This document shows, piece after piece, positions 17,791 through 52,078 of a stretch of 64,000 nucleotides of DNA. The DNA is taken from positions 237,705-301,704 of the forward strand of contig VRVR01000015.1 of the NCBI GenBank assembly GCA_009859145.1, read 5' to 3'. Numbering within the stretch: position 1 is the stretch's first letter; the number at the start of each line of letters is the position of its first letter. Both the position numbers and the translations under genes were made by a program. The notes under the pieces are model-generated. The model did no database searches. It was not told where the DNA came from and was given only the letters and a program-made list of their open reading frames with translations. This DNA is from Andalucia godoyi And28. Taxonomy: Eukaryota > Protista > Jakobida.

Positions 17791-18480
17791 TTCTTGTTTT
17801 GCTTGGGTGGTGTTGTGCCAGTGGAAAAACGTCGGTTGTTGCAGTTTTGCTGCAGTTGTTCCTTTTCTTCTTCTTGTTATTATTATTATAATTATGGGGT
17901 TTTTTAAAAAAAAGTAATACAAAACAGACAGAAGAATATCAACGGAAAGCACGACAACGTCCTTTATATGCTTTTCTCAGAAAACAACATATCGCCGATA
18001 TGACGCCGCGCCTTCAGTGATGATTCGGCGTCAAAAAATATCTATACACATATATCTATGCAAAGCACGATTATTTCTCCCTTACCCCGTTTCTCCTGCG
18101 CTCGAAGCCCCGCTTTTTGGCGGGGCTGATCTGCGCGGAGGAAAGTAGTTGGATTTGGTGGAAAAAGAATCGGCGTCATTTTTGCGGTCGATCCGAGCAG
18201 AGTGCCCAACGGGAACCCAAACAACCGAGTGACAGCTGTCTCTTTGACTCCGCTTGCGTAGGAGGAGCTCGGTGTTGGTAGCAGATTCTAGAGCGGATGT
18301 TCAAAACCAATTGAACAAAGAGAAAGGAAGTAACCTCCGATTAACTTTCTCCGCGTGATAAATTTTATGTGTGTTTCTCTTCTAATTTCTCATAATCTGC
18401 GCTGTTGCAGATACCAGTCATGTGCATTCGAGGGTTGCGCATACGGGAACCGCGTTATCTCGGGCCAGTGGTGAATTGCA

Positions 18481-20658: not shown

Positions 20659-20879
20659 CTTCTTCTTCTTCTTCTTCTTCTCTTCTTCTCTTCTTCTCTT
20701 TCCTTTTTTGCTTCTCCCTCTACAAACTCCCTTCAACACCTCTTTCTTCACAAAGAAAAAAAAGGAAAAGGAAAAGGAAAGGAAAGCAAGAAAGCGAAAA
20801 GTTAAAAGACGGCGAAAGAAATTGAGCGGAAATAAAAGAGAAAAAGAAAGGAAAGAAACAGCCAACAACCAAAAACGTG

Positions 20880-22365: not shown

Positions 22366-22396
<31 letters not shown>

Positions 22397-22521: not shown

Positions 22522-25500
22522 ATGTCGTCGTCGAATGTTTTGAAAGAGGATACCGGCGCAGCTTCAGTAGTCACAAATCCATTGGACACTGGATCACGGC
22601 GTCCGGCAGCGGCGCCATCCTTGTTTTCTGCCCGTTTCTCAGCAGCGTCGAAAGCTTCGGATACCTTCCTGCCGGGAAGCGGCGCGATGTCTTCAGTTCA
22701 AGGTTCAGCACTGTCTGTGAGACCGTCTCTAAGATCTCCTGACGCACTGCTGCCGCCACTGAAACCGCCGGTACAGCCTCCTGCTGTTGAGCTGAAGTCT
22801 CCTGTGCCTTCAATGCCTCCTTTGCCGCCACCATTAAGCGTAGCGGATCGTGTTGCGGGGCGGTCGAGTGTGGCACCGCTGCCATCAGGGTACAGAAGAG
22901 GTGGACTTGCGATGGGAGGGGGAGATGGTGCGCTGGATTCATTGCCGGATTCAGGGACTCCCGGTGCATACGCGCAGAACAATGCATCCACGAACGGAGG
23001 TGGAGCGGACAATGCAGATGGAGGGGCCTTCTCGAATGTGGCGCCGATGGGCGGCTCGGGACCTATGAGGAGAAAGCGACCGACGATAGACGAAGTTGCA
23101 AGACAATTGTTTGATCAGAGGATGAAGAAGAAGATCACGCTACATCGTCGTGCAATGTGGGTGTCCATTCTGCTGCTGTTTTTGCTTACCGGGTTCCTGT
23201 TTTACGTCACATGGCGATTCCTGTTGATTATGTTAAGTGGCAGTGCCTACGACTCGGATTTCAAGGTCGACGGCGCCGTCACTGCTAAATCTCTTACGGT
23301 TTCCAATTCTGTTTATGCACCTCTGATAAGCTCGCAGAGCCTTACCGTTTCGCAACCAAAAGGGACGGCGGCGCAAATCCGTCTTGAGGAAGGACCAAAT
23401 TCTGTAGTCCTGTCGACGAGCGGGGATGCCGGTCAGCGGTTCTTGCTGTCGAATGGAACGTCCAGCTTGCTTGTTCTTGATTTTGTTGCATCGTCTGCGC
23501 CGTTTTCAGTCGTCATGTCTCCTGATTCTTCCATTCCCAGCTTTTCCATTTCTTCCTCCAGCCACAAAAGTGGTGGCGGCGCGTCTCATGCTCGAGAATT
23601 TTGGAGAGGCGTCCAGCATCAATCGTCGTCTTCATCGACCGGCGCCTCCATGACCGGGTATTCTGTTCAGACGTCCGCGGCGGCGTCTGTGTCTCCATTG
23701 CCCTCTGGTGGATTTACTTTCCTTGGTCGCTATTTGACCCTTGGACAGTCCATGTATTTTGACTCCGTGAGTCGAGAGTTTGCTGCTGATCGGTTAAGGA
23801 TGCTTGTCGGGAGCTTCTTGTTGGGTAGTTCCGAGACGAATATCTCGACGAGGTCGTTCTCTTTGGATGTCAAGAACGCCTCCGTGTTATCCTCCTCATC
23901 ATTTGACTTCAGGTTGTCAGAAGGATATTCTTCCTCGTCGTTTTTTGGCGTATCCCTTGTGTCTGGTGCTCCCGCGATTTTTGTGAACCAATCGGGGAGC
24001 GTGGGCATTGGTACTCGTGTGCCTGGCTCCACGCTGGATGTGGCGGGAGACCTGACGGTCCGAGGAAAGTTGTTTGTCACCAACACAGTGTCAGATTCCG
24101 GCAACTTCCAATATGTGGTTGCATCATCTGGTATGGTCACCAACGCAATTACTGGAAGTGCAAACAGCGATATTGTCGTGAAGAGCGCTCCGGGAATGGG
24201 GTTACAGGTTGTTCTTGCAGGACCTCCAGCAGCATCCAGCATTTTTTCCGTGAACGACACTCTGATAGTCAATTCATATCAGAAGTCTGTGTCCGTGAAC
24301 AATCAGTTGACTGTCTCTTCATTGTTCTCCGTTTCAACCTTGTTCTCCGTTTCGCAGCCGAGCAATCTCGTCCTTGTTTCTGGGCAGTTTGAAACAGTCG
24401 GATCTGCGCGCTTCAGAACTCGCTCCACGTTTGATGCGGGGTTTGATGCGTCTGGGTTGGCGACGATTTCGGCTCTCGAAACATCGTCGATCCGGAGTAC
24501 TGCTTCCAATGCGCCTTTTGTAATATCTGCAGACTCGGGAGCGGTCGTCATCAACGTTTCACAAAGTTTGGATGTCGGAGCCGGGATCCTCTACGTGAGC
24601 GTACCAAACAAGCAGGTACGCATCGGCAATGATTCAAACTCCAACCTGCTCATCATGGGAACCATGACAATTGGTGGAAACTTGAGCGTGTCCGGATTCA
24701 CCTTCATGTCGAACGTCACTTCAACGACCATTACCCAGTCACCGATCGTGGAAACAAATCTGATCAGACCGCTGAATTTGTCAACCGGGGTTATCCAGAT
24801 TGAATCATCAGCGGGGACGGATGTCCTCGTAAATTTGCTGCCTGGTTCGTCTGGTGCTTCAGGCAAGTTCATTGTAGGAAACGACGCACTGATTGTGCAG
24901 AGTTCCCCAGCTTCGGTCGTCGCTCGAGATCTGACAGTCGTCGGATCTCTCCTTGTGAATGGTTCCACAAACTTCGATCAGCTTTCCATTATTTCTGCGG
25001 TGTTTGTGGGGAGCACTGGATCGTATTTCAAGAGTGCAGATTTCTTGGTGATGAATGCTTCCGGGAGTTCCCGGCTGCTTCCAGGTTCTGTGTTGACGGA
25101 CATACTCACCCCATCGAGCCCCTCTGATCTTCGATTTATCAGTGCCACCAACAGGAACATCACAGTTGATATTCAAGGAACAGGTAGATTTGTCATCGCT
25201 TCTGGATTATTTATGGTATCTCCGTCTTCTCGCTTGTTGTCGTTCGGACAGTGTGGCTCATCCACAACATGTGCAGATTCTGCGGACTTCGATGCAGTCG
25301 TTGTTTTTCGACGCTTGTTGGATGTGCGTTCGACTTTGCTGATGAATAACTCGAGCATCGTTTTCTCTACATCCGGTTCCGTTTTGAACAATTCCGGCAT
25401 TTATTATGTTTTTGGGTCTTCCACGTTTTCTGTCGACGGGAATGGGCTGTTGTTGAAAAATGCCGGTGCGTCGTCATCTCTCCTTCCTACGTCGCTCAGC

Positions 25501-28500: not shown

Positions 28501-31500
28501 GGGAATTCGACCATTTCGGGTGCCGGTATTTCAACACCTTCCGTCAGTTCTCCTTTGCTTACATCGAATGCTGCACAGGGTCTAACATTGCAGAGCTCTT
28601 CTTCTATTTCTGTATCTTTCAACCGGTCGTCGGCTTTCCAGATTAATTCAGCACTTTCGCTGTCGTATGACGCCTTGTCTCGTGGCATACTCAGCATTGG
28701 GACGAGCGACACCGTCCGCGTTGTTATTGGAAATTCCACTGCTTTCCTCTCCGGGCCAAGCTTCGCGCTTTCTGTGGGAGGAAATGTTTCTGTCATGAAT
28801 GGTCTGTTTGTCGGAAATTCTTCTTTGCTCGAATCTGGCTCTCTAACAATGTCTGCTAACAGTTCCCGAGCACAGTTGACAGAGTCTGCACTCGGATTAT
28901 ATTCCACATCGGATAGTTCGTATTCTCAACTGCTTGCAAATCGTTTGGTCGTTTCGTCTACTTCATCGTCAACTACTGTTTCAGCGGACGGCCTTCTCGT
29001 GAACAAAATCTCCCCACAATCGAATCGCGTGCTGTCTGTAGATCTACTTTCGTCTCTCGGCATTGAGTTTTTATTCAATGCTTCATCGATGTACTCGACA
29101 TTCCAATTGAATGATGCATTCACAGTTGCGCTGTTTTCTCGCACGATTGCGTTTGGAAGCGTGAATGCATCCGTAACTTCCAAATTCTTTGGCAACGTCG
29201 TCATTTCTGGTTCCATCAGCATTTCCGACTCGATCTATTTGAATTCGACTTTCGTAGTCGGATCTCAAAGCGCAAATACGACGATACAGCTCGACCAAAT
29301 TCGTTTGCTGACACCCAGATCTCATCTTTCTCTCACCTCCGAAGGCATTTCACTCGGAAATGTTAGTTCCAATCTCGAAACGCTCATTACTGCCTCCCAC
29401 ATCTCTACTGCCTCGGTCATGGGATCTTCCTTTGCAAATCTTTCGATTCAAGCACAACCGCAAACGGATATCGTACTCTCGTCTCCATCTGGGCGGGTTG
29501 TGATTGGGTCGAGCGAGTTTGTTGTCGTGGATTTCCGTGATAACACGACGTCGCGTATGCGTGTTGGATCTGCGGATGCTCTGGCCGGGCTGGTCAACGT
29601 CAGCGCAGGTAATGAAGTGTTTTCGGTGGGCGGCGGAGTTGTTGTGGCTGGAGACCTCCGATCCGGTGGGTCTGTGCAGTTGCGAGGGCGAGACACCGTA
29701 TTCTTTGATGTGACGAACACGGACGCAAGCGGACATTCCAGCCTGTTTTCTGCACGTCTTTACAACGGATCTTTGCTGTTGCGCGAGATTGGCAACGGAA
29801 CTGTTGCAGATGAGACGATGTTGGTTACAGCACGAGAAATTCGAAAGGGTTCGATGGTGTTGAGCCCATCTGGATTGGTGAACGTGCGATTGGCGGCACC
29901 GTCGGAATCTGACCTTGTTGTCAGTTCTGCAGCAGGTCGTAGTGTGTTTGTCGTTTTGGCAGCGAAGGCCAATGCAAATGCGAACGTATCTGCAACGGAC
30001 TCGGGAGTGTTTGATGTCGGATCGGGAATATTGGTCGTCAATGGAACAATGCAACGAGTGCTTGTGCGCGGGGAGGTCCCATCGACGCTCCGCAACGATG
30101 GTGACGTTTTGCGTGTGAATGGCTCTGTTGCAGTCGACGGATCGTTGCGTATGAGCGGAAGTGTTGTGTTGTTGGGCGACCAAGGCCAGTCTGTCGTGCA
30201 AGTCGGCTCGTTTGGAAGCGGCAATGGAACACGAATCGATTCTTCCGGACTGCAGATTGTGCAGCGCATTACTGCGAATTTGTCGTCGTGGTCGTGGTAT
30301 TTAGCCGCAGATGCACGCAGTGTCACTGTTGGTGATGATGCCAGCGGCCGCCGCACTCGCCTTGACTCACAGAGCGTTGAAACTGGGACGTTGTTTGCGT
30401 CTGCTGGACAGTCGCTTGTTCTGAAGTCCAGTGCTGATCACGATGTTGTGGTGTCACTTGTTCGCAATGCATCTGAGTCGCGGTTTGTTATTGAAGGTTC
30501 TTCTGGCGTGCTCCTGACGGCAAATGGTTCTTCCGGTGTTGTGCGTATTGGAGGAGACTTGACGGACAGTGGCATTTTGCTTGGCGGTTACAATGCTCGT
30601 TTTGGCGTTGTGGGCAATGTAGGAGTTGAAGGCAGCATCCGCGTACGTGATGATGTTGTCATTGCATCCGCTGGCGGCGCAGTTCGCGTTGGTGCGAATG
30701 GAACCGCAGGACCGTCTACTTCAATGGTGGCAGGAGGACTAACAGTGTCTGTTGATGGGGTGGTTCGAGCGAACGTGTCTGCTGCAGGAATCAGCATGTT
30801 GGGAAGCGACGGAAGTACCTCGGCTGTGTCGTCGTCAACAGTGCAAGTTTCCACGGTTCGTGCGGATACTGTAATTGCACGAAATGGAACGTCTGGGTTG
30901 GTGATTGCAGGAGGATCCGCGGGAGATGTGACGATCGACGTTGTGCAGAATCATAGCGTTGCAGTTGGTGCGGGTGCGTTACGCGTGTGGCGCGATGTTT
31001 CGTTTGCGAATATCAAGATGTCGGAAGATGACATGGTCCGCTTCACTGTGGGAAATGTTTCTGGTACATCGCTGTATTCTGCGACTCGTCACATGGTTGG
31101 TATTTCAGGATCTGTGCTGATCGGCGGCGACCTGCAGATTGGCGCTGCCTTTTCTGTCAATGCCTCGAGCGGTATTGTGTCGATTCTCTCGGATACTAGT
31201 GTTGTGTCTTTGAGTTCGAGCATTCTTGCTATGACCTCGTCTTTATCCAACCAATCTATTGCCGTATCCGCGTCCGGTTTGGTGCTGGTGAGCCCGCAGA
31301 GTATTGCTCGTCTAGACAGTTCTGCGCTGCAGATTTCATTAGTGCGCGGGGTTGACAATTCGTCACTGACTCTTTCTACTCGGAACGGCGGCAATGTAGT
31401 TGTTGAATTGGGTGCTTTGACCATGGACAACAATCAAGGATCTCTGCTTGTCGGAGATTCGTTGCTCACTGTTTCGTCAACACGTTCGTTTGTTGTGGGA

Positions 31501-34500
31501 TCAATGCAGAAGCCTGTATCGTCCTTCTTCTATGGATCCACGTTGTTTGATGGCAGCGTGACTTTTGCCTCTGCTGTTCAACTTGGTAATGCTTCGTCAC
31601 TTGTATTTGGCAGCGGTAGCGACTATTCCAGACTTGATGTTTCACGTGCGTTGTTTGTGTCGGGTAATCACACCAGTTTGCTTACGAACGCCGCATTGTC
31701 GTTTGGAGAAGGCAATAGCACGGGCACCATTGTGTCAAATGGACTCATTTTGACGGGTGTTCTCTCTTCATTTGTGAACAGTTCATTGGATCTTCGTTCT
31801 GTGAACGGCACCATTTCTGTGTCACTAGGTGCTAGTGGCGTGTTTGCGGTGTCCGGAAACTCGTTTTCAGTGAATGCTGTATCCAAGTTGATATCATTGT
31901 CTGGAGGCGCAAGCGGATTGCATGCATTCTCGTCTGCTGCGGATCGATTGTCCGTCAATGGAAACATTCTGTTACAAGGGGAATTTATTTCTTCGGGATC
32001 TGCACGGTTGGTTGGTGCGTCACAGGTGCTGTCTGTTGAAGATGCGTCTATGAACAGTTCGGTCGTTGTTTCAGCGACGGGGTTGAGAATGTCGAGCAAC
32101 TATAGTGGTGGTGTGTACGCTTTGTCGGTTTTGCAAGCAGATTCGTTGACCATCGACACGACTATTGTTTCTCGGACTGGTGTTGTTACAAGCAAATTAT
32201 CCTCGCCGTCCGGGACCGATCTTCTTGTGCAGATTCCGGATAGTCATGTCATGAAGGTCGCATTTGGTAATGGAACAGTGGCCGGTATTTCTGGAAGTTT
32301 TATTGTGGGTGCTGATCGCCTTGTTGTCAATGAAACTGAAGGGTTGGTTCGTGTTGGTCAGAGCAGCATGAATGCAGGTACGTACAGCGTATTGCGGGCA
32401 CATGCATTTAGAGTCTCGGGTAATTCCAGTTTCATGGATGATTCGGAAGTTCTCGGCTCGTTGACACTGCCATCTAGTGGTTCAGTGTTGCGCGTAGGCT
32501 CCAACTCTTCTGTGACGACTGACATCAAGATGTCGGGTATCGCTGTATCGGGAGTCGATGCGTCTGGTACGATTGTTCGCAGCTTCATGGGTGCAAATGG
32601 GTACTCCGTTGTTGGTGCATCGGGTTCTTCCTCAGTTCTATCTTCGTCTGGCTTAGTTTCGAGTCGTGTCGGACCTCTTTCGGGGTCTGATTTTGAGATC
32701 GGCATGATTCAAAACGCAACCATGAAGATTCTTCTTGGCAACAGTTCTGTTGGTGGTGGCGACTTCTCTATCTTGAGTGGGAACAACTCCTTGTTATCAG
32801 TCAGTGGGTATCAAAATCGCATTGTCATTGGACATCCATTGGGGTCCGATGCGAACCAGGCGTCTGTGTTGTCTGTTGCTGGAGTGTCTGTGTTTGATGG
32901 TGACGTACTGTTGTCACACAATATGCAATTAACGGCGTCCGCTGGAGCTATTACCGTTGGTAATGTGACTTCGGGAGTGTTCTCAGTTGTTCGACCTACG
33001 TTTGTTCGTTTGACTTTTGGACCAACAGTCGGGCAGTTGGAATCTGGAATGTTGAGTTTTATGTCTGATGGTCAGTCGTCGTCATTAAATGCATCTCTTG
33101 CAAGTGTGGACACAGCAGCGGTCATGATGATTCGAAACAGGAACACTAGCGGTTTGTCGATATTGGCAGATTCGAATACAGACGTGTCTGTGGTTTTGGG
33201 TACCAACAGCACGTTCAGCGTGGCATCGAATGTGTTGCGAGCATTCCAGCATTCTGGAGTGCGGTCGGTTGTGCATGTCGGTCGTCTGATGCAAGGCGCT
33301 ACATTGTGTGTATCGAACCGCTCCGTCTGCGATTCACCGATCGCGGGCGAGGAGTTTGCGATTTCGGTGGATGGTGGTTTATATGCATCCCGGACATTGC
33401 GAATTGGTGCCACGGTGGATGTCGATGGTACCTTGGGTTCTTTGTCTTCTACGATTGGGTACAATAAGACAGTCATGAGCGCAGCTGGTTTGGTCGTTGC
33501 CGATCTGAATCGATCGCGTTCCGTTGTCATGGACAGTGCGTCGGTCATAGTGCGTGGGCCAAGTGACGCGTCGTTGCTGACATCGACGTATTTGCGAACC
33601 TCGACAGTCATCGCTGCAATTGGTCGAAACTTGACCGTTGTTCCGTCGGATTTGGCAGATGTTGTGGTTGACCTTTCTTCTGGTACGTCACGGTTTATCG
33701 TGGGTTCCGAGATGATTGTGTCGCCTTCGATGTCACTGGTTGAGATAGGATCAAGTGGGAGAATTGCCGGTGCAGTTAATCTTGCAGTTTCTGGAAATGC
33801 CACGATTCGCGGTGGTCTTCAGATTTCGTCGCGTGTAGAGATTGCTGAGGAGTTGCGCATTACGGACGCTTACTCAAGCGGAGTCTTGTCAGCGACTGCT
33901 CATCGTTTGCTGGCTCAGAATAGTTCTGGAAGCGCTTCCTTGTCCGCTGATGGTATTCTGGTTACTGCTGGAGGTAACGGATCGTTATCGACGAGTGTTA
34001 TGGCGGGCGTTGTGTCAACTGCCACCATTCTTGGCGTTACTGGTAGCGATCTTACCGTGTCTTCTGTGACGAACACATCACTTTGGCTTCTTAGTCCATC
34101 TGGACGGGTTGTGATTGGGTCGAGCGAGTTTGTTGTCGTGGATTTCCGTGATAACACGACGTCGCGTATGCGTGTTGGATCTGCGGATGCTCTGGCCGGG
34201 CTGGTCAACGTCAGCGCAGGTAATGAAGTGTTTTCGGTGGGCGGCGGAGTTGTTGTGGCTGGAGACCTCCGATCCGGTGGGTCTGTGCAGTTGCGAGGGC
34301 GAGACACCGTATTCTTTGATGTGACGAACACGGACGCAAGCGGACATTCCAGCCTGTTTTCTGCACGTCTTTACAACGGATCTTTGCTGTTGCGCGAGAT
34401 TGGCAACGGAACTGTTGCAGATGAGACGATGTTGGTTACAGCACGAGAAATTCGAAAGGGTTCGATGGTGTTGAGCCCATCTGGATTGGTGAACGTGCGA

Positions 34501-37500
34501 TTGGCGGCACCGTCGGAATCTGACCTTGTTGTCAGTTCTGCAGCAGGTCGTAGTGTGTTTGTCGTTTTGGCAGCGAAGGCCAATGCAAATGCGAACGTAT
34601 CTGCAACGGACTCGGGAGTGTTTGATGTCGGATCGGGAATATTGGTCGTCAATGGAACAATGCAACGAGTGCTTGTGCGCGGGGAGGTCCCATCGACGCT
34701 CCGCAACGATGGTGACGTTTTGCGTGTGAATGGCTCTGTTGCAGTCGACGGATCGTTGCGTATGAGCGGAAGTGTTGTGTTGTTGGGCGACCAAGGCCAG
34801 TCTGTCGTGCAAGTCGGCTCGTTTGGAAGCGGCAATGGAACACGAATCGATTCTTCCGGACTGCAGATTGTGCAGCGCATTACTGCGAATTTGTCGTCGT
34901 GGTCGTGGTATTTAGCCGCAGATGCACGCAGTGTCACTGTTGGTGATGATGCCAGCGGCCGCCGCACTCGCCTTGACTCACAGAGCGTTGAAACTGGGAC
35001 GTTGTTTGCGTCTGCTGGACAGTCGCTTGTTCTGAAGTCCAGTGCTGATCACGATGTTGTGGTGTCACTTGTTCGCAATGCATCTGAGTCGCGGTTTGTT
35101 ATTGAAGGTTCTTCTGGCGTGCTCCTGACGGCAAATGGTTCTTCCGGTGTTGTGCGTATTGGAGGAGACTTGACGGACAGTGGCATTTTGCTTGGCGGTT
35201 ACAATGCTCGTTTTGGCGTTGTGGGCAATGTAGGAGTTGAAGGCAGCATCCGCGTACGTGATGATGTTGTCATTGCATCCGCTGGCGGCGCAGTTCGCGT
35301 TGGTGCGAATGGAACCGCAGGACCGTCTACTTCAATGGTGGCAGGAGGACTAACAGTGTCTGTTGATGGGGTGGTTCGAGCGAACGTGTCTGCTGCAGGA
35401 ATCAGCATGTTGGGAAGCGACGGAAGTACCTCGGCTGTGTCGTCGTCAACAGTGCAAGTTTCCACGGTTCGTGCGGATACTGTAATTGCACGAAATGGAA
35501 CGTCTGGGTTGGTGATTGCAGGAGGATCCGCGGGAGATGTGACGATCGACGTTGTGCAGAATCATAGCGTTGCAGTTGGTGCGGGTGCGTTACGCGTGTG
35601 GCGCGATGTTTCGTTTGCGAATATCAAGATGTCGGAAGATGACATGGTCCGCTTCACTGTGGGAAATGTTTCTGGTACATCGCTGTATTCTGCGACTCGT
35701 CACATGGTTGGTATTTCAGGATCTGTGCTGATCGGCGGCGACCTGCAGATTGGCGCTGCCTTTTCTGTCAATGCCTCGAGCGGTATCGTGGCTGTTGTCT
35801 CTGCTGGGGACAGTTTGGTGCTGACTTCCTCTGGATTGTCTGTCGCTTCTGTGCCGACTGCTGCTTTACTTGATGTGTCATCGTCGGCTCTGCGGTTTAC
35901 GAATGGAAATGCTTCCACTGTCGTTTCCAGTTATGCTGTGTCCACTGCTCGGCTTACGGCTCCAGTTAATGGTTCTCTATCTATTTCCAGTGGTTCGGAT
36001 GTGTCTGTGAATTTTGGCTCCTCTTCCGGATTTACCGTATTGTCTGCGAATCAGCTCTACGTGAATGCTTCTGTGGTTTCTGTTGCTCGAACTGTGTTTG
36101 ATGTAGACTCTGCCAACGTTTCCTTTGGCGGTTTTGTTTATGCACCGACGGGTCTGCAATTTGGAAAAGGGCTATATTCCTCAGAGCCGTCATCGGAATT
36201 TGTCATGTCGTCGGCCGGCAGATCGGTTTCTGTCACCTATGGTGGCATTTCGTTAAGTTCCAGTGGATTGATGTCCACTCTTATGTTGAACAGCAGTGCG
36301 CTGATGTTTTCTTTGAATAATTCGTTTGTTAGACTGTCTGCAACGTCAATTTCTACTCCAGCTGTTTTTTCAGCCGATGGTATTCTCTCTATTTCTGGTC
36401 TTGCAGTTTTTAATGAGTCTTCGAAGTCAGTACGGATCGGCACAGCATCTGGTTTGTTGGTGGATGATGCTAACTCATTTTCGAGTTTGGGAGGGCTTGT
36501 CAACGTCAATGCCACTCGAGGTTCAGTGTCAATCGGCAAGGTTGAGCCGGATCCAACAAAGATGTTGTACGTGAAGGGCGATACTCTTATCGAGGGTTCA
36601 TTGTTTATGACGGGATTGCTGGATTTCTCTTTGCCTGGTGCAGGCATGTCATTTGGTGGTAATGGCACTCGCTACAGTTCGTTGGATGATTCCAAATTGC
36701 GTCTTGTTGATGGTGGTTATGAATCCGTTATGACTGCGGATTCCCTGACTTTCCGCAATGGGTCATTTGCGGTGTCATACTTGTCCCATGGCACAATGAG
36801 TGTGCCTCGGATTATCTCGTTGGAGTCCGTAACATCTGGTACGAGCTTTACTTTGAATCTGAACTCAACTCAATCGGCTGTAATTTCACTTCCTGTTCGT
36901 GATTCTTTGATATTCCGGGGTTCTTCCAACTCCTCTGTTTTCGAACTCCGCGGTCCAACCTTGTCAGATGCGCGTTCACAAGTTCAGTTTGGGTCGTCTC
37001 CATCTGATGTATCGGTGTTCGTTGGATTCAATCAGTCGTCTTCTGAAGTGAACGCGTCGACTTTGTCGCTGGCTGTCGGGGGTAGTTCTCTCTTCTATTC
37101 AAATATGTCGATCTTTGGAGACGTCTTCATCAATGGATCCAAGACATTAAGAATATCTTCTTCCGGAAATATGGTGTCGCTGGATCGCTCCCGGCTGACG
37201 ATGGTGAGCCCAGGATCCTCATCCGTTCTGTCTGGATCTTCATTGTCTGTGACAAATTCCTTCCAAACATCAATAGTTTCTCCTGGGTCAATTGAAACAC
37301 CCTCTATGAGTTCTCCATTATGGTATTCTGCTTCATCTATGTCATTGTCTGCAGCAACAAACATCACCGTTGTGATTGGTGCTCAGACATACGCTGTTCT
37401 TGGAGTTGATAATGTGTTTGATTTCCGGAAAGATGTACGTTTGGGCACACAGTTGTTGAATTTTGCGGGAACATCGACAAATATTGATATTTCGCACACC

Positions 37501-43500: not shown

Positions 43501-46356
43501 TTAACTTCGGACTCTGGCTTCCTTTCTATGGTCGTTGGCAGCATTCCGCGGTTTGGGGTTTCCTCTTCGCGAGTTCATGTGCAGCACTCGTTGCTTGTTG
43601 ACGGCAGAGGTACGTTCACATCTGGCATTTCTGTGCCGGCTGAAGCTGGCATTTCTGTTTCGGACAGTTCGACATACTCTCTGGGAATTTTCCCGTCAAA
43701 CGTAACCATCCGCGACTCCACAGCGCCCAGTAAGCGTTTGGAACTGTCGGTGGCGTCTGGCCTGTCGATTCAAGATTCTGCATCTTCGAGCATTGCAAGA
43801 GTCACCGCAGATTCAGTTCTCGTCAATCGTGTGTTTACGAATAACATTACTGCGAATAGCACGAACATGTTCGTTATGGATGTTTCTGCATCGTCTGGTA
43901 TGACTCTGTCATTAGGCAGCAGTTCGCGCTTCTCTGTATCGTCCGGTGCCTTTGTCCCGCTTGCAGTTGACGCTTCAGTTGTCACTGTAAACACAACTCG
44001 CGGGCTGTATGTGGGATCTGCTTCGGCATCGGTGCCAGGGCTTTCTGGCGCAGAGCGATTGATAGTGTCAGGGGATGTGGTTGTCACTGGAACATTTGAT
44101 GCTCGTGGAGGACTGAAACTTGTCGGTCTGAATAACTCTCTCTCTGTGGGGGATACGACAATTGTGCAAGAAAGGATTGTTGTCGAAACGTCTGGACAAG
44201 GTCGATCAACCATTACTGCGGGTAAGATGTCCTTGGTGAATGACACGTTCTCCTCGGTGCTGACTGCGGGGGCTGGCCAAGTTCTCCGTCTCGGATCCTC
44301 TTCCAATCCTGTTCTGACCGTTACTGCTGGCTTGAATTCTCGAGATGTTGTTGCTGTGTCGGCTGCAGGATCCCTCGTCGTTGGCGGACCTGTCGACGGT
44401 ACTGATTTGTACAATGCTTCCGTGCATGTTTTGGCCGTTGACGGACCTTCGTGGTTTGGTCTCGGAGGTCTCACGATTGCCGGGGACATCTCAATGCTGA
44501 ACGTGTCAAACAAGTTGCGGTTCGGAACGGGATCGGAAACTCTGACTGTGGACCGCAGTGGTATTTCTGTGGTGGCTGGTTCGTTGTCCTCTGTTCATTC
44601 TTCTTCAAGTCTTTCTTTTTCTTCGACTTCCACGAGTTCTCACGTGGATTCCGTTGAGGTAATCTTCTCTTCTTCTACGTCGCAGTCTTCTTTGTCTGCA
44701 TCCAATGTTTCGAGTCCTTTGTTGCTGGCGGATTTGGTTTCTTCTCGTTCTTCTATTCTTTCGATTAATGCTTCCAATGCGGTTCAAATCGGTGCTTCAA
44801 GCTCTGGAAGTGTGTCGTTGTTCGGAGACAATCTGTTCGTGCAGTCACATCAGGTTTCCATGAATCCGAGCAATGGAGTTTTGATTGGTTCATCGTCATC
44901 AGGTCGATCATCTGAAGTACTGGTTGTGGATGGTAATGCACTGTTCAAATCAAATGTCAGCTTCTTGGCAGGGATCGTGTCAGGAAACAGCAGCGGATTT
45001 GGTAGTTTGTCTCAATCTGGACTGCGAGTCGTGGATGGCGGTTCTTCGGCGACTCTGTCTGCGTCCACTCTGAGTGTTTCGACTGTTGTTTCCTCCAAGC
45101 TCGACCTCTCGTCCTTGGCGTCAGACATGCAGTTCCTGGTGAACACGTCTCAGTCGGTTGTGTTCCTTTCCGATTTTGTTCGTATCTTTAATGGCCCATC
45201 CCGTCGAACGTTTTTGCTTGGTGGTACCCCTACGTTGTTTTCGAGCACTGCTCACACGTTTGGAGTAGTGGGTGATTCCGTGTTCCAAGGTTCGATTACT
45301 GTTGCAGATTCCACTGGGTCCTTCTTCTTGTCTGGTGGACTGATGAGGTCTGGCAGTTACAACTTGTCTCGTACGGATATTCTCAATGCTTCAATCTCCT
45401 CTGTCACGCCCACCGGATCAACGACGATTTCTGGCCCGTCTCTCATGGTGTCGGATGTGTTCCCTGGATCGAGCGTCAACATTTCCTCGTCTGCTATTCG
45501 CGTTGGACGGTCTGATTCTGCGAACACTGCATCGTTAACGTCTGACGGGTTGAGTGTTTCTAATGGGTCGTTTACGTCCGTTGTGACACGCGATCGCATT
45601 GAAACTTCTACGCTCCTCGGTCCGTCTGCGTTGACCATCACCACATCGGGATCGAGCAATATTGACATTTCCTCTGGCAATCGGGTTACCGTTGCTTCTG
45701 GATCGTCGAAGCTTACCGTTGCGAGTGCCTCGGGTGTGCAAGTCGAGGGAGCGTTTGTGTCCAAGATTTCCAGTGGCCAATCGGTGTCATTCGAAGTTGT
45801 TTCGTCCACCAAGAAGTTGACGTTCAATGGTGATGTCCTCAAGCTCGAGAAGAATCCTTCTACGTATTCAGAGCTGGAAGCAGGATTGTTGACAACGACG
45901 GCTGTGAGTGTTTCCAATATCTATCCATTATCAGGCAGCGCTCCGGTTTTGGTTACCGCTTCAGCGAGTTCGACATTGGACCCGAATCTGGGCATTCTGT
46001 ACCCAGTCTTTGCTTCCGTTGGAGTGTTCGCATTCCAAGGCAACGGCCGTGTCGCTGGAAATGTCACCGTTTCTGCCGTTGGATCTACAAAGTCTCTGTT
46101 GCTGTCCGACAGCCTTATTACGATTTCTAATACTGCGTCGTCAACCTCGGCTACCCTGTCCAGTTCAGTGTTTAACTTCAATTCTGTCTTCGTCCTCAGT
46201 CCCACGATGGTCACCATCGGAAAGGATGCGACCAGCACGTATTTGTCGATCAATGGGTTGGTGAATGAAACAGTTGGTTGCTTTGCTGACGTGCCGAATG
46301 CGAAATGCCTGTATGTGAACATCAATGGAGTGCAACGGACGTTGCTGTATGTGTAA
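22522..46356 (+). CDS. Giant 7,944-aa intronless single-pass (type II) membrane protein with a Ser/Val/Gly-rich beta-repeat ectodomain; function unknown
   Basis: Stop-free for 23.8 kb. Pro/Ser-rich N-terminus, a basic stretch (RMKKKITLHRR), then one hydrophobic helix at about aa 212-238 (nt ~23155-23235). The rest is quasi-repeated short amphipathic strands with very many N-x-S/T sequons and few Cys. Confidence 0.9.
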   Translation: MSSSNVLKEDTGAASVVTNPLDTGSRRPAAAPSLFSARFSAASKASDTFLPGSGAMSSVQGSALSVRPSLRSPDALLPPLKPPVQPPAVELKSPVPSMPPLPPPLSVADRVAGRSSVAPLPSGYRRGGLAMGGGDGALDSLPDSGTPGAYAQNNASTNGGGADNADGGAFSNVAPMGGSGPMRRKRPTIDEVARQLFDQRMKKKITLHRRAMWVSILLLFLLTGFLFYVTWRFLLIMLSGSAYDSDFKVDGAVTAKSLTVSNSVYAPLISSQSLTVSQPKGTAAQIRLEEGPNSVVLSTSGDAGQRFLLSNGTSSLLVLDFVASSAPFSVVMSPDSSIPSFSISSSSHKSGGGASHAREFWRGVQHQSSSSSTGASMTGYSVQTSAAASVSPLPSGGFTFLGRYLTLGQSMYFDSVSREFAADRLRMLVGSFLLGSSETNISTRSFSLDVKNASVLSSSSFDFRLSEGYSSSSFFGVSLVSGAPAIFVNQSGSVGIGTRVPGSTLDVAGDLTVRGKLFVTNTVSDSGNFQYVVASSGMVTNAITGSANSDIVVKSAPGMGLQVVLAGPPAASSIFSVNDTLIVNSYQKSVSVNNQLTVSSLFSVSTLFSVSQPSNLVLVSGQFETVGSARFRTRSTFDAGFDASGLATISALETSSIRSTASNAPFVISADSGAVVINVSQSLDVGAGILYVSVPNKQVRIGNDSNSNLLIMGTMTIGGNLSVSGFTFMSNVTSTTITQSPIVETNLIRPLNLSTGVIQIESSAGTDVLVNLLPGSSGASGKFIVGNDALIVQSSPASVVARDLTVVGSLLVNGSTNFDQLSIISAVFVGSTGSYFKSADFLVMNASGSSRLLPGSVLTDILTPSSPSDLRFISATNRNITVDIQGTGRFVIASGLFMVSPSSRLLSFGQCGSSTTCADSADFDAVVVFRRLLDVRSTLLMNNSSIVFSTSGSVLNNSGIYYVFGSSTFSVDGNGLLLKNAGASSSLLPTSLSMVSTTSSSSFNASALSTPLVVSNAVLTDRITTSSSLLTIQPRATLLVALNDSSSAARFVVGDTMGLVVFQNRSVVIGGSAPSWLPEASALRVTGTSVFDGSVVAQGISLRNSSQFALNLTSSRISFGSSSTTWSSFSPEYLRLDSVSQNSVHTATSSTFSDALSGVVSSLESAGVSFTSSTDRSLLNASRLAFSGTSPDTVSLNRNGIVVYSAVGVVTVSPTVVSVAEGVMSSAISAGNVTTPVVLSPVIQSTNGSLSIVSAQGSDVIVNPGIAAASSGRFVIGNASVLSVNPGSRSLSFGLAGSSACLNCLTVGVSSSFLSSVNFSSDVYVSQNASVFVGLDGPVVTTISSGQISLRNGSISTVVSHGYVESAAVRATYSWTSDTVFAPLFRSFNGSNIVLQPDASSNLTVSLFDNSSSTFCVAQSGICRFRVFGSGGAVVVGSRQPSSFSLSSGRFLVDGTSVFGGDVYIEQGLVFSSNSSKLLFSDAVRTVSLSSAGFGATSSLTSSSLSETNLLIWTNSSSVMLSSSSLSMSDNNSRSSALSSSGLNVSSSSSSYTSLDGNGIVLFGSGSQSNVTALYVATDRLFSNSIMSRSTSDLSITSSPGRSVLVGFGGVLNVSASAAKVRIGSGVSNQIIMGSDVLEIGGGSVFDGVVRGQQFLAASRLSNYSSNLEDYRLTLLDMVLNISTIISSRSLVIAGSGSDSLAATSSMLVLTNQLHRAQLNASLLSFADTLQSVQVSVERVSATSSSSSAIFTFDGFSVHNIVTNRTMVANSLGVQTADVSSGRVSLLSSGSLQMSSNSSASSILNDSAVVFSGSNYSAVYGKETVLSSPGTNARISSSAVAISSATYASSLSAEGLSTAFIFSPGSRPLSLVPMTGMDVNVNLSSSLFTVYSGTRNLFSVDGNLHTIFVNGPISDSSLQNVSSVVSLTTVGDVLLEGSMFATGNVSLRSSSSRVSIGAVSGPLVEVSSEFLSFSFASDRLLASRFGLMVSATSGNSTISGAGISTPSVSSPLLTSNAAQGLTLQSSSSISVSFNRSSAFQINSALSLSYDALSRGILSIGTSDTVRVVIGNSTAFLSGPSFALSVGGNVSVMNGLFVGNSSLLESGSLTMSANSSRAQLTESALGLYSTSDSSYSQLLANRLVVSSTSSSTTVSADGLLVNKISPQSNRVLSVDLLSSLGIEFLFNASSMYSTFQLNDAFTVALFSRTIAFGSVNASVTSKFFGNVVISGSISISDSIYLNSTFVVGSQSANTTIQLDQIRLLTPRSHLSLTSEGISLGNVSSNLETLITASHISTASVMGSSFANLSIQAQPQTDIVLSSPSGRVVIGSSEFVVVDFRDNTTSRMRVGSADALAGLVNVSAGNEVFSVGGGVVVAGDLRSGGSVQLRGRDTVFFDVTNTDASGHSSLFSARLYNGSLLLREIGNGTVADETMLVTAREIRKGSMVLSPSGLVNVRLAAPSESDLVVSSAAGRSVFVVLAAKANANANVSATDSGVFDVGSGILVVNGTMQRVLVRGEVPSTLRNDGDVLRVNGSVAVDGSLRMSGSVVLLGDQGQSVVQVGSFGSGNGTRIDSSGLQIVQRITANLSSWSWYLAADARSVTVGDDASGRRTRLDSQSVETGTLFASAGQSLVLKSSADHDVVVSLVRNASESRFVIEGSSGVLLTANGSSGVVRIGGDLTDSGILLGGYNARFGVVGNVGVEGSIRVRDDVVIASAGGAVRVGANGTAGPSTSMVAGGLTVSVDGVVRANVSAAGISMLGSDGSTSAVSSSTVQVSTVRADTVIARNGTSGLVIAGGSAGDVTIDVVQNHSVAVGAGALRVWRDVSFANIKMSEDDMVRFTVGNVSGTSLYSATRHMVGISGSVLIGGDLQIGAAFSVNASSGIVSILSDTSVVSLSSSILAMTSSLSNQSIAVSASGLVLVSPQSIARLDSSALQISLVRGVDNSSLTLSTRNGGNVVVELGALTMDNNQGSLLVGDSLLTVSSTRSFVVGSMQKPVSSFFYGSTLFDGSVTFASAVQLGNASSLVFGSGSDYSRLDVSRALFVSGNHTSLLTNAALSFGEGNSTGTIVSNGLILTGVLSSFVNSSLDLRSVNGTISVSLGASGVFAVSGNSFSVNAVSKLISLSGGASGLHAFSSAADRLSVNGNILLQGEFISSGSARLVGASQVLSVEDASMNSSVVVSATGLRMSSNYSGGVYALSVLQADSLTIDTTIVSRTGVVTSKLSSPSGTDLLVQIPDSHVMKVAFGNGTVAGISGSFIVGADRLVVNETEGLVRVGQSSMNAGTYSVLRAHAFRVSGNSSFMDDSEVLGSLTLPSSGSVLRVGSNSSVTTDIKMSGIAVSGVDASGTIVRSFMGANGYSVVGASGSSSVLSSSGLVSSRVGPLSGSDFEIGMIQNATMKILLGNSSVGGGDFSILSGNNSLLSVSGYQNRIVIGHPLGSDANQASVLSVAGVSVFDGDVLLSHNMQLTASAGAITVGNVTSGVFSVVRPTFVRLTFGPTVGQLESGMLSFMSDGQSSSLNASLASVDTAAVMMIRNRNTSGLSILADSNTDVSVVLGTNSTFSVASNVLRAFQHSGVRSVVHVGRLMQGATLCVSNRSVCDSPIAGEEFAISVDGGLYASRTLRIGATVDVDGTLGSLSSTIGYNKTVMSAAGLVVADLNRSRSVVMDSASVIVRGPSDASLLTSTYLRTSTVIAAIGRNLTVVPSDLADVVVDLSSGTSRFIVGSEMIVSPSMSLVEIGSSGRIAGAVNLAVSGNATIRGGLQISSRVEIAEELRITDAYSSGVLSATAHRLLAQNSSGSASLSADGILVTAGGNGSLSTSVMAGVVSTATILGVTGSDLTVSSVTNTSLWLLSPSGRVVIGSSEFVVVDFRDNTTSRMRVGSADALAGLVNVSAGNEVFSVGGGVVVAGDLRSGGSVQLRGRDTVFFDVTNTDASGHSSLFSARLYNGSLLLREIGNGTVADETMLVTAREIRKGSMVLSPSGLVNVRLAAPSESDLVVSSAAGRSVFVVLAAKANANANVSATDSGVFDVGSGILVVNGTMQRVLVRGEVPSTLRNDGDVLRVNGSVAVDGSLRMSGSVVLLGDQGQSVVQVGSFGSGNGTRIDSSGLQIVQRITANLSSWSWYLAADARSVTVGDDASGRRTRLDSQSVETGTLFASAGQSLVLKSSADHDVVVSLVRNASESRFVIEGSSGVLLTANGSSGVVRIGGDLTDSGILLGGYNARFGVVGNVGVEGSIRVRDDVVIASAGGAVRVGANGTAGPSTSMVAGGLTVSVDGVVRANVSAAGISMLGSDGSTSAVSSSTVQVSTVRADTVIARNGTSGLVIAGGSAGDVTIDVVQNHSVAVGAGALRVWRDVSFANIKMSEDDMVRFTVGNVSGTSLYSATRHMVGISGSVLIGGDLQIGAAFSVNASSGIVAVVSAGDSLVLTSSGLSVASVPTAALLDVSSSALRFTNGNASTVVSSYAVSTARLTAPVNGSLSISSGSDVSVNFGSSSGFTVLSANQLYVNASVVSVARTVFDVDSANVSFGGFVYAPTGLQFGKGLYSSEPSSEFVMSSAGRSVSVTYGGISLSSSGLMSTLMLNSSALMFSLNNSFVRLSATSISTPAVFSADGILSISGLAVFNESSKSVRIGTASGLLVDDANSFSSLGGLVNVNATRGSVSIGKVEPDPTKMLYVKGDTLIEGSLFMTGLLDFSLPGAGMSFGGNGTRYSSLDDSKLRLVDGGYESVMTADSLTFRNGSFAVSYLSHGTMSVPRIISLESVTSGTSFTLNLNSTQSAVISLPVRDSLIFRGSSNSSVFELRGPTLSDARSQVQFGSSPSDVSVFVGFNQSSSEVNASTLSLAVGGSSLFYSNMSIFGDVFINGSKTLRISSSGNMVSLDRSRLTMVSPGSSSVLSGSSLSVTNSFQTSIVSPGSIETPSMSSPLWYSASSMSLSAATNITVVIGAQTYAVLGVDNVFDFRKDVRLGTQLLNFAGTSTNIDISHTSMSLTSGSKTSRLRAADLTVDLIGASRLVSRSLDTTIASVVLGDRFVAIGSSAVASSYADDQIVLLAPSINLRHPSSGSTNVTVGGALTVLGPAVFTAGFNLQGGLLVGDMSLQPSFISITNSSLSSRLDANKIYFSDNVRTSRLDVSGLDTPSVVSTYLGSSTSLQIAAQSSIRLDVTSGNISLLENTVISNSTLRFGSTSASFILDIRASTSFRGSVSTVLPVSSSFSVSSDVESIFTVESSGNASRVVFSNGSRPLSVFVGSAGQFIPQGFRSGTSFAVDGYTQLSGALVSVLTDVEIGASNMIRIGQGLNVSQNLLSLSHSGSSVLLSSKSAVFASSAGSTVVNSSHVVATNVIAESVSLSSRIAILNNSESIDVSAREVSVSTVNSSSTLTASQLVFVSNGGSVSSLSSSALLVGSANITLLRAQQILGYDAGLELRPAAGSALRLFVDDSVTAVIGNLVSDLLRVSQNGSQSLFSFSSGSLLRLGDISSSLKSHRFANGSSMQVSGSVLIGSSLFISGDVELNSTSSLQLGDLSLRSGLLSASSNGRSSVVSSSMVNVSSGMSFSAIMDDSVWTPRVRASTKLVLLAPEVVVTDGVTDFISATSSRVQILQYVRVQHTSGLTVASDLIGTYKVDVTPYQLSLTMPGKVTTLTPTSVTTTSFIGSGVQSLVGGAVVDMNSNSMVLRTSTLSISPATDEIVVHAPGGLRIGVSSSFQTNTTIFGNLEVKSSLSIGQDLTLGQNARLAVGSVKLDTDTISSVVGSKNFSLSATGIRFVDAGNSSVLSSMSLTTGSVISSVLSSHDNLNIRSDAAVILQNGLMRVAASAVGLSLSAVPRSSSTSILNVEGNSTFYGSVSIDVAVGESMSLSSNGSVFVSMSASRTFIGNALVLGSASSSTAATILSVGGVSEFFDDVVFSKSVNFSSLSSRIVIGNQSLGSELSASGLQILGNGSLVVSSREIAITDGLQRTTVSASGLVSTGSIDAVSALLRSLIVSVENSSVRVQPSGLIVSDSMSSLEVSASALRLQSQTSESSITSSSITSLLLNSTSVVTSSIVGKNSSDLVLSPSQGKRLVLSLDVSSSQQMVIGTVAHPIIDIVSQNASSDPLVRLGGTTYVSLGRSQSIGNLSSVAGMAFVVDGLSMFAQNVSLSATLRASPGSALVADALSGSSIRVGDGAVFLSSTTNKFASLDSSLLNMSSPTSWSAMSASSITTQSVIVPSISSSASSLSIESTNVLIRSGFTTVMSFTTSTVDVFANIAMGSKKISFLSTDTSKSISVEADTGISVTSGISTSAITGFAVTTATLKTSSVQSVLASSVALSFSADSILLSTVGGTVPSTTASSLFVTTPGGVYIGTSSSKSNMTIEGSLRVTGSLDLAGSLSLSQLASFAIGQVRMASTSVSVVDGNSSSVVNSTHVVVGTIGSATTVSSQSLSTRDVYVERLLPLRASTNLTVAVSGSEWFSVGQQLMVPASGAVLIGASPLSPSEGESLSVVGALVSRRLSVLDSTSVSVNFGLLSDPVFSVSSNASGDVDFVRVGKGSRLSVLSLGSTSSLETLYSSSQFGIYSSRGVVVGNDSVVLGDLVLGGSNSAIKFASGVSSFVLSGSVLSLSDSGANSVILLDSSGLKFVSNNNVSFFNSSGLSSPSISTNRLVSRSESLSISASQLSLASTSRMSFNSVVSIAGSTVEVSSGSMLYIGNSSNFAASGESFVVDGRSRFSGNVSFVSSTVSLLSDSSFVLSSGSLATSVLAGSVYVSGPLGSTSVSGASCALVSADGLSQTTLSPSLLTSSEVRASRVFVSESLSSVASDLQLRPANSSFGVMVDVASPGQFFAVGNSSAVGFSVSTVLNGHVVQMGSTGSRIQFRVGNVSAAVFSPVSTTSASFVSEGSSVLGGSVSILGSAYIRGAGRSLFVGDTDESGIHVSVAGSSIQLLDGSVPAVSAQLLRDRLAFTNGNGFTSQLDARQLNVSTIVSSWLSGSPTASLNISTGSAQNMFLTSDSGFLSMVVGSIPRFGVSSSRVHVQHSLLVDGRGTFTSGISVPAEAGISVSDSSTYSLGIFPSNVTIRDSTAPSKRLELSVASGLSIQDSASSSIARVTADSVLVNRVFTNNITANSTNMFVMDVSASSGMTLSLGSSSRFSVSSGAFVPLAVDASVVTVNTTRGLYVGSASASVPGLSGAERLIVSGDVVVTGTFDARGGLKLVGLNNSLSVGDTTIVQERIVVETSGQGRSTITAGKMSLVNDTFSSVLTAGAGQVLRLGSSSNPVLTVTAGLNSRDVVAVSAAGSLVVGGPVDGTDLYNASVHVLAVDGPSWFGLGGLTIAGDISMLNVSNKLRFGTGSETLTVDRSGISVVAGSLSSVHSSSSLSFSSTSTSSHVDSVEVIFSSSTSQSSLSASNVSSPLLLADLVSSRSSILSINASNAVQIGASSSGSVSLFGDNLFVQSHQVSMNPSNGVLIGSSSSGRSSEVLVVDGNALFKSNVSFLAGIVSGNSSGFGSLSQSGLRVVDGGSSATLSASTLSVSTVVSSKLDLSSLASDMQFLVNTSQSVVFLSDFVRIFNGPSRRTFLLGGTPTLFSSTAHTFGVVGDSVFQGSITVADSTGSFFLSGGLMRSGSYNLSRTDILNASISSVTPTGSTTISGPSLMVSDVFPGSSVNISSSAIRVGRSDSANTASLTSDGLSVSNGSFTSVVTRDRIETSTLLGPSALTITTSGSSNIDISSGNRVTVASGSSKLTVASASGVQVEGAFVSKISSGQSVSFEVVSSTKKLTFNGDVLKLEKNPSTYSELEAGLLTTTAVSVSNIYPLSGSAPVLVTASASSTLDPNLGILYPVFASVGVFAFQGNGRVAGNVTVSAVGSTKSLLLSDSLITISNTASSTSATLSSSVFNFNSVFVLSPTMVTIGKDATSTYLSINGLVNETVGCFADVPNAKCLYVNINGVQRTLLYV
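29494..31175 (+). repeat. Internal direct repeat, copy 1 (1,682 bp, ~560 codons)
   Basis: Matches 34105-35786 at offset 4,611 nt (in frame). Both boundaries were checked by eye, and the shadow ORFs in the track are identical between the copies. Confidence 0.92.
34105..35786 (+). repeat. Internal direct repeat, copy 2
   Basis: See copy 1. The first mismatches are synonymous positions just outside the ends (GGG/GGA; ATT/ATC). Confidence 0.92.
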
Positions 46357-46412
46357 ATGCATTTTTCTTGTATTGTCATTTGTGCTCCTGTGCTCCTTCT
46401 TTATCATCGACA

Positions 46413-51947: not shown

Positions 51948-52065
51948 AGGTACGGCCATACTAGAGTGAAAATACCGCATCCCGTCCGATTTGCGAAGTC
52001 AAGTGCTCTCAGGCTGGAGTAGTACTGAGGTGGGTGACCACTCGGGAATTCCCAGTGCTGTACTT
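51948..52065 (+). rRNA. 5S rRNA: Cytosolic 5S rRNA, single dispersed copy
   Basis: Sequence AGGTACGGCCATAC...GAA...CCG.ATCCCGTCCGAT.TGCGAAGTCAAG...GTAGTACT...GGGTGACCAC..GGGAA.TCC..GTGCTGTACTT carries the eukaryotic 5S signature segments. The 5' AGGUACGGC pairs with the 3' GCUGUACUU (helix I). About 118 nt. Confidence 0.95.
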
Positions 52066-52078
52066 TTTGCGACTTTTT
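52064..52078 (+). terminator. RNA polymerase III terminator T-runs
   Basis: TTTTT immediately after the 5S 3' end, with a second TTTTT 5 nt further on. Confidence 0.75.

Follow-up and report, generated by a model that had tools for sequence, protein, structure and literature searches.

What kind of gene is the 23.8-kb open reading frame (ORF) that occupies positions 22522..46356 on the plus strand of a 64,000-nucleotide (nt) stretch of the Andalucia godoyi And28 genome (GenBank assembly GCA_009859145.1, contig VRVR01000015.1, positions 237,705 to 301,704 of the forward strand; the whole stretch is referred to as the window), and what does it encode? Our answer, to which we assign a probability of roughly 55% taken as a whole, is that the ORF is a real gene, complete in one exon, of a eukaryote poor in introns and that its product of 7,944 amino acids (aa), here called the giant protein, is a type II single-pass membrane glycoprotein bearing a beta-helical surface fibre of about 50 diverged module copies, for which a homotrimeric state is preferred. 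The gene is read here from sequence alone.

The ORF, reported as stop-free in a first-pass annotation of this DNA, starts with an ATG, contains 7,944 codons followed by a stop, has no internal stop and is the sole long ORF at the locus. An in-frame stop is located 15 nt 5' of the ATG. The probability of 7,944 stop-free codons arising by chance is ~(61/64)^7944 or ~e^-381 (own arithmetic), and the length of the frame combined with a GC content of ~50% in the window excludes a chance opening. Codon usage is the same as in the flanking genes, indicating that the gene is native to the genome; the local proteome is in general rich in Ser and Ala. Tandem Repeats Finder detects no DNA tandem repeat inside the ORF. 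Its sole match is a perfect (TAT)10 microsatellite at 22366-22396, ~125 nt 5' of the ATG. The public protein model in EukProt (P0005) corresponds to aa 1-4617 of the ORF (window 22522-36372), lacks a stop codon and is shorter by 3,327 aa, so the current annotation truncates the gene. At the 3' end, the stop codon lies just 56 nt from that of a convergent BTB-domain gene (46413-48533, minus strand; interval 46354-46415), and the 3' untranslated regions of the two genes must therefore overlap or be extremely short.

The giant protein carries the topology signals of a type II membrane protein. Its N-terminal head (aa 1-210; 22522..23151, plus strand as for all parts of the gene) is of low complexity and rich in Pro (26 residues, e.g. 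PPLKPPVQPP...PSMPPLPPPL at ~aa 74-106) and closes with a juxtamembrane basic cluster at aa 183-210 (RRKR...KKK...HRR). A hydropathy scan places a single transmembrane helix directly behind it at aa 211-238 (AMWVSILLLFLLTGFLFYVTWRFLLIML; 23152..23235), the sole strong hydrophobic segment near the N-terminus. Because the basic residues are found on the N side of the helix, the positive-inside rule indicates an N-in, C-out orientation. Both the ~210-aa head with one helix preceded by basic residues and the type II topology had been proposed in the first-pass annotation and are retained here. The membrane-proximal ectodomain (aa 241-530; 23242..24111) resembles the following array in composition; it does not match the module profile described below and probably holds about two further degenerate modules. 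The array itself (aa 531-7797; 24112..45912) consists of ~45 detectable tandem degenerate 150-aa modules and ~50 in all. The distal C-terminal region of 147 aa (aa 7798-7944; 45913..46353) is module-free, ends in a Cys pair (C7920/C7929) and represents a possible tip or folding-nucleation domain. No Pfam match was found for the C-terminal 259 aa.

Sequence patterns of the ectodomain fit an extracellular, folded protein. The giant protein is composed of 20.9% S, 12.1% V, 9.9% L, 9.8% G, 7.5% A, 6.8% T, 2.3% P, 1.7% E, 1.1% K and 0.1% C with W very scarce, in agreement with the earlier description of a ~7,700-aa ectodomain dominated by S, V, G, L and T. N-x-S/T sequons, noted before as abundant, number 202 in the ectodomain compared with 102 +/- 9 in shuffled sequences and 1 in the head, and are located between the conserved hydrophobic columns of the module. 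All but one of the 11 Cys residues form close pairs 3-9 residues apart (911/917, 1301/1304, 1416/1423, 3596/3603 and 7920/7929), a spacing that suggests small disulfide-closed loops of an extracellular protein.

The ectodomain is organized as an array of one degenerate module. An iterated hidden Markov model (HMM) seeded on the motif 'G..S.F.G.V' converged on 127 columns of a ~150-aa module and identified 45 copies between aa 531 and 7797 with a spacing of ~135-167 aa. The profile has 0 matches in 41 controls (20 globally shuffled, 20 locally shuffled and 1 reversed sequence) and none in the window's other ORFs. Stretches that the profile leaves uncovered (including aa 241-530, 1679-1848, 5135-5398 and 6201-6423) have sizes that are multiples of the module, which puts the true module number at ~50. 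The best-scoring copy (aa 2445-2584; 29854..30273; 79 bits) is the first row of module alignment A1 and the start of the query used for structure prediction. The module consensus reads SVLSS..V.T........S.L...S.....V.V.....S..F.VGS..L.V......V.VG..(loop)..L.V.G...F.GS....G........S...VG...S....SL..SGL and corresponds to ~11 strands that are very short, carry two conserved hydrophobic residues of inward type apiece and are often followed by Gly. Modules are ~20% identical to one another, yet the hydrophobic and Gly columns are kept. Self-BLAST shows internal similarities to be weak, save for one large duplicate, and a repeat search seeded on the strongest of these BLAST pairs (aa 5552-5792) stalled at 3 copies.

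The degenerate module proposed in the first-pass annotation is thus real, with all of its motifs (V.T..I.S...L.L.S.....V.V, F.VG...L.V, V.VG and L.V.G...F.G.V) present in the consensus, and repeat detection, which had been suggested there as a check, resolves the array by iterated HMM. Its description of alternating hydrophobic and small residues holds for the very short strands only. The pattern phi-x-phi-G is enriched twofold (146 compared with 77 +/- 8), whereas phi-x-phi pairs overall are not enriched, and hydropathy autocorrelation is neutral at lag 2, negative at lags 1, 3 and 4, and has weak peaks at lags 8, 10, 16 and 18. Strand seeds number ~630 with a median recurrence of 10 aa, a spacing that, like the phi-x-phi-G enrichment, favours a fold of the beta-helix or fibre type.

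A low-entropy, Ser-rich composition could also result from an accidental or decaying frame in biased DNA, from faulty assembly or from a disordered mucin-like stalk, and the complete lack of homologues and a mean predicted local distance difference test (pLDDT) value of 36 for single-sequence AlphaFold2 (AF2) prediction would fit such a non-functional origin. We consider it very improbable. The e^-381 chance of the open frame, the lack of DNA tandem repeats, host-like codon usage and module columns conserved at ~20% identity with 0 matches in shuffled controls argue against it. Mucin-like stalks are rich in Pro, Thr and Ser and low in hydrophobicity, unlike the giant protein, where V, L, I and F together make up ~30% and Pro is at 2.3%, and in which hydrophobic columns are conserved. 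With respect to the charge-hydropathy (Uversky) boundary, all 153 windows of 100 aa are on the folded side and none on the disordered side, showing that the ectodomain is not a mucin-like disordered stalk; predicted disorder, which the first-pass annotation had named as evidence against its proposal, was thus not found, and AF2 models likewise contain beta structure only. The sequon and Cys-pair patterns further point to selection in the secretory pathway.

The large internal duplicate, which the first-pass annotation does not mention, bears on assembly. Copy 1 (29484..31175; 1,692 nt) encodes aa 2322-2885 or ~3.7 modules and copy 2 (34095..35786) follows at an offset of 4,611 nt, both on the plus strand. 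The copies have sharp boundaries and are exact save for one mismatch (29493), a degree of identity that could favour an artefact. Beyond the duplicate edges, aa identity is 21-32% as between any two modules, and dN/dS (nonsynonymous over synonymous divergence) between the paralogous module flanks is ~0.4-0.5 with dS saturated, a ratio that favours a real coding gene. Both copies are also carried by the public gene model. The duplicate represents either recent gene conversion, segmental duplication of ~3.7 modules or an assembly artefact.

The giant protein is an orphan. When aa 2301-3500 were compared exhaustively with 1.84 billion cluster representatives by phmmer, the sole match was the protein's own truncated public model; this negative is a strong one, and no orthologue or paralogue therefore exists within HMMER's reach. 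Searches of Pfam, NCBIfam and PHROGs using halves, pieces and 37 separate modules found no recurring family, PDB sequences yielded nothing with single pieces, and no relative was found in JGI metagenomes. A Phage_T4_gp36 match to aa 151-700 is sub-threshold (E 0.0087, 16.5 bits compared with a cut-off of 26), and a literature search by protein length gave no match. Word-index searches, for which the queries were the module alignment and the last 1,200 aa of the protein, also found nothing, and are weak negatives that did not recover the query protein itself because the index is swamped by Ser-rich words. The earlier statement that no described family has this architecture is borne out by the phmmer, Pfam, NCBIfam, PHROGs and PDB sequence searches; the paralogues and homologues that it had proposed to look for were absent from the cluster representatives, and no full-length match to a characterised family emerged. 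The module is a new repeat family, while the type of object, a giant surface fibre of tandem beta modules or a type II trimeric beta-helix, is already known.

Structure prediction gives beta structure only. Single-sequence AF2 prediction of aa 2301-3100 was unusable (pLDDT 36.5). With a multiple sequence alignment (26-row module-pair alignment A3), the two-module segment aa 2445-2747 reached a mean pLDDT of 60.6, with 70-85 over much of the second module, and a predicted template modelling score (pTM) of 0.36. This model is an extended beta chain without helices and with few intrachain strand pairings, which is how AF2 would render one chain of an intertwined fibre. The lack of helices in both models agrees with the earlier remark that long charged helices are almost missing. 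Foldseek searches of the PDB with the alignment-based model returned no significant match (best E 0.17, template modelling score (TM-score) ~0.15). The non-significant matches are nearly all chains of trimeric beta-helical fibres, including the Mu tail fibre, T4 gp34, HylP-type hyaluronidases, K1F endosialidase, VgrG, gpV and R2-pyocin spikes, with sarcoglycan chains at ranks 14, 19 and 41. In BFVD, neighbours are phage proteins annotated as YadA-like, S74-chaperone tail fibre and endosialidase (E 1.9e-3 to 0.02, probability up to 0.77). Across the fibre neighbours in both databases TM-scores range from 0.1 to 0.26 for a query model of pLDDT 60.6, and the neighbours are consistent with a trimeric fibre and not proof of one. 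Monomer prediction with fold search, a check proposed in the first-pass annotation, hence returned the extended beta-only model and fibre-chain neighbours and nothing significant in the PDB. The homotrimeric beta-helical rod that it proposed is consistent with the beta-helix profile matches, which are marginal, and with the fibre-chain neighbours, none of which is significant.

A monomeric ectodomain with the same gene and topology is possible, if less probable than the trimer, either as a three-sided beta-solenoid of ~0.1 µm or as ~50 independent small beta domains as in giant bacterial Ig-repeat adhesins. In its favour, the modules form separate units of 150 aa joined by variable linkers, and AF2 confidence is unequal between the two modules of the query. 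However, in the alignment-based model neither module is packed as a compact sandwich or as a closed solenoid; long stretches at pLDDT 70-85 are instead extended and have few strand pairs within the chain. Strands with ~2 conserved inward residues are also short for Ig-like sandwiches, and a constant coil period of 18 or 22-25 residues is missing. Single-chain solenoid families (pectate-lyase-like and left-handed beta-helix (LbH)) have no Pfam match in the giant protein, where the weak lag peaks and marginal matches to the LbH of UGPases and to an antifreeze protein are found. The latter show that the module profile also matches monomeric beta-helices, whereas the Foldseek neighbours are overwhelmingly intertwined trimers.

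Profile searches of PDB sequences point to beta-helices at marginal significance. Module alignment A1 gave marginal matches only (E 0.05-7), comprising gamma-sarcoglycan (E 0.05 and 0.15), the LbH domain of plant UGPases (E 0.09-0.2), an antifreeze beta-solenoid (E 5.4) and beta-sarcoglycan (E 7.2). Three of the eight best ranks are thus taken by sarcoglycans in a set of 177,635 PDB sequences, of which six are distinct beta-, gamma- or delta-sarcoglycans. The hypergeometric probability of this is roughly 1e-12 by our own calculation, an optimistic figure since orthologues are non-independent. Each sarcoglycan also scores above 500 of its own shuffles against the module profile. Sarcoglycans are type II proteins whose transmembrane helices form a three-helix bundle and whose ectodomains, which are N-glycosylated, fold together as a rigid beta-helix of three chains with disulfide-bonded C-terminal loops on top (PMC12404760; PMC12871233). 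Like them (PF04790; PDB 8yt8, 9c3c), the giant protein is predicted to cross the membrane once in type II orientation, with basic residues clustered ahead of the transmembrane helix, and has a sequon-rich ectodomain of short strands; its C-terminal Cys pair may be compared with their disulfide-bonded loops.

These likenesses raise the question of whether the giant protein is a very distant, hugely expanded member of the sarcoglycan family in which strand motifs were amplified into modules. Topology is identical, gamma- and beta-sarcoglycans rank high in the profile search, sarcoglycan chains recur in the Foldseek list, a Cys pair is located at the C-terminus, and the sarcoglycan segments 'SVETPLVRA...LRLES' and 'LRVTG..ALFEHSV' resemble the module motifs 'V.T..I......L.L.S' and 'L.V.G...F.GSV'. 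However, these motifs are non-collinear with ~45 extra residues between them, and short-strand patterns can converge. For direct comparison, a human gamma-sarcoglycan query, which matches 9c3c_g at 580 bits, was used and a 12-sequence alignment (A2) was assembled with delta and beta sequences taken from PDB alignments. Comparing A1 and A2, hhalign gave a probability of 0.75% (E 0.075) over 24 columns, the sarcoglycan HMM scored 4.4 bits on the giant protein compared with a shuffle maximum of 3.6, which is noise level, and Pfam Sarcoglycan_1 had no match at E <= 1 with the whole protein or E <= 10 with pieces. Tested in these three ways, sarcoglycan homology was not established, and we regard it as unlikely. 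Sarcoglycans also differ from the giant protein in being ~290 aa long without module repetition, in forming a heterotrimer of paralogues where the giant protein has no paralogue, in having a C-terminal four-Cys cluster (invariant C283, C285, C301 and C308 in A2) in place of the single pair 7920/7929, and in being known from animals. Two vertebrate gamma-sarcoglycans (P0123, P0124) carry a precomputed match to PF10106 (DUF2345), presumably the beta-helix region of VgrG, and one module of the giant protein also matches PF10106 (E 0.4), which may reflect a sequence pattern common to triple beta-helices and not homology.

Other known fibres resemble the giant protein in part. The triple beta-helix fibres of phages and secretion systems (T4 gp34, gp12 and gp5, Mu tail fibre, HylP, endosialidase K1F and VgrG/gpV) are long and rigid and composed of short strands with Gly corners. 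In contrast to the membrane-anchored giant protein, they are soluble parts of virions or secretion systems, are 10-30 times shorter and often end in an S74 intramolecular chaperone, which is lacking here (no Pfam match in the C-terminal 259 aa), as is any Pfam or PHROG tail-fibre match. Trimeric autotransporter adhesins (YadA, BadA) and giant repeat adhesins (SiiE, LapA, MpIBP) form surface fibres of 0.1-0.6 µm from tens of tandem beta modules and function in adhesion, and represent a functional analogy; the top BFVD match of our model is annotated 'LbR_YadA-like'. Those adhesins are however prokaryotic, are anchored by a C-terminal beta-barrel or a secretion system, contain recognisable Pfam repeats and are not N-glycosylated, whereas the giant protein is encoded by a eukaryotic gene, has an N-terminal transmembrane helix and lacks Pfam repeats. 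No Pfam or NCBIfam match to a YadA-type anchor or to head and stalk repeats was found in it.

Several observations weigh against the membrane-anchored trimeric fibre. The public gene model ends early, at aa 4617, and the 1.7-kb duplicate, if an assembly artefact, could alter the true protein length. Autocorrelation reveals no fixed long-range coil period. There is no significant similarity to any beta-helix family: the hhalign alignment to sarcoglycans has a probability of 0.75% (E 0.075, 24 columns), the sarcoglycan HMM score (4.4 compared with 3.6 bits) is at noise level, and all Foldseek matches in the PDB have E >= 0.17 and a TM-score of ~0.15. With a pTM of 0.36 the AF2 model is of mediocre quality, and Foldseek in any case tends to pair extended chains of low confidence with fibre chains. 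The trimer is argued by analogy. Oligomeric state, length and cytoskeletal link are properties that we infer, as is, entirely, the function.

The genomic neighbourhood is that of an ordinary eukaryotic locus, with flanking genes on alternating strands and mostly whole in one exon. Ahead of the giant gene lie an OST3/OST6 fragment (2106-2615, minus), a 2-oxoacid dehydrogenase E2 (5750-7372, minus), an EF-hand protein (7563-10544, plus), SGT1/ecdysoneless (11894-14017, minus), a Ser/Thr kinase (14849-16564, plus), an NmrA-like protein (16906-17952, minus) and V-ATPase A (18823-20868, minus), which is eukaryotic with mammalian nearest PDB entries. Behind it and the BTB gene follow a SET protein (48849-50501, plus), a WD40 protein (50544-51458, minus), a lone 5S rRNA (51948-52066, plus; Rfam RF00001, 100.8 bits) located between protein genes and unlinked to other rRNA genes, a mitochondrial-type ribosomal S6 (52367-53083, minus), a Kelch protein (56539-58929, plus), a short-chain dehydrogenase (59256-60029, minus) and a fatty-acid desaturase-cytochrome b5 (60362-61759, minus). 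The cytochrome b5 domain of the latter is C-terminal, the Ole1-like fusion order, and this fusion is a possible taxonomic clue. The OST3/OST6 ORF, encoding an oligosaccharyltransferase subunit, matches only the C-terminal part of its profile (positions 181-292 of 294) and probably represents a single exon of a gene with introns, in which case the genome is intron-poor and not intron-free. Two orphan ORFs without a Pfam match are present, one of 859 aa with many hydrophobic segments (53231-55810, plus; P0003 in EukProt) and one of 596 aa that is Ser-rich with a (GS)n run (3567-5357, plus). Four flank proteins are known only as EukProt singleton clusters by exact look-up in a 15-billion-protein collection, and together with the eukaryotic character of the flanks this makes the protist origin given in the first-pass annotation plausible.

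In the model that we prefer, the giant protein would enter the membrane during its translation and in type II orientation, with the head in the cytoplasm and the ectodomain outside. The Pro-rich head may dock cytoskeletal or adaptor proteins, with SH3-, WW-, EVH1- or profilin-type domains as candidate partners. The ectodomain would be N-glycosylated in its turns and fold into a continuous beta-helix, preferably a homotrimeric triple beta-helix similar to the tower of beta-, gamma- and delta-sarcoglycan or to phage tail fibres and ~40 times longer. As no paralogue was found in 1.84 billion representatives, the trimer, if any, should be homomeric. The triple beta-helix of T4 gp5 spans ~110 Å with ~187 residues. 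Calibrated on this value and with layers of 0.48 nm, the ~630 strand seeds, or ~11 strands in each of ~50 modules, would give a length of ~0.25-0.3 µm for a triple beta-helix compared with ~0.1 µm for a single-chain three-sided solenoid. The distal C-terminus with its Cys pair is a candidate tip or folding nucleus. The most economical role would be that of a structural surface fibre serving as adhesion element, tether, spacer or coat. The roles suggested in the first-pass annotation (prey capture, attachment, a glycocalyx or hair, an extrusome filament) are speculative, and the last of them is hard to reconcile with an N-terminal membrane anchor that is permanent.

Tentatively, the giant protein may represent a new class of eukaryotic surface fibre, a homotrimeric triple beta-helix of ~0.3 µm rooted by three N-terminal transmembrane helices with Pro-rich heads and composed of ~50 modules without detectable homologues among 1.84 billion protein clusters. 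Such a fibre would either have arrived independently at the design of sarcoglycans or phage fibres or be an extremely remote non-animal relative of sarcoglycans, and could match visible, molecularly unassigned hairs, glycocalyx filaments or attachment fibres. The new repeat family could enter domain databases, with the truncated annotation (public model ending at aa 4617) flagged. To our knowledge, the protein identities of protist surface filaments are mostly unknown, and the giant protein would, if the model is true, provide a molecular candidate for them. No longer beta-helical fibre rooted in a membrane would then have been described from a eukaryote. The question would arise whether sarcoglycans and phage fibres share an origin with the giant protein or have converged with it, and the model would indicate that the type II trimeric beta-helix design of the ~290-aa sarcoglycans of animal muscle can be scaled to organelle size by module amplification.

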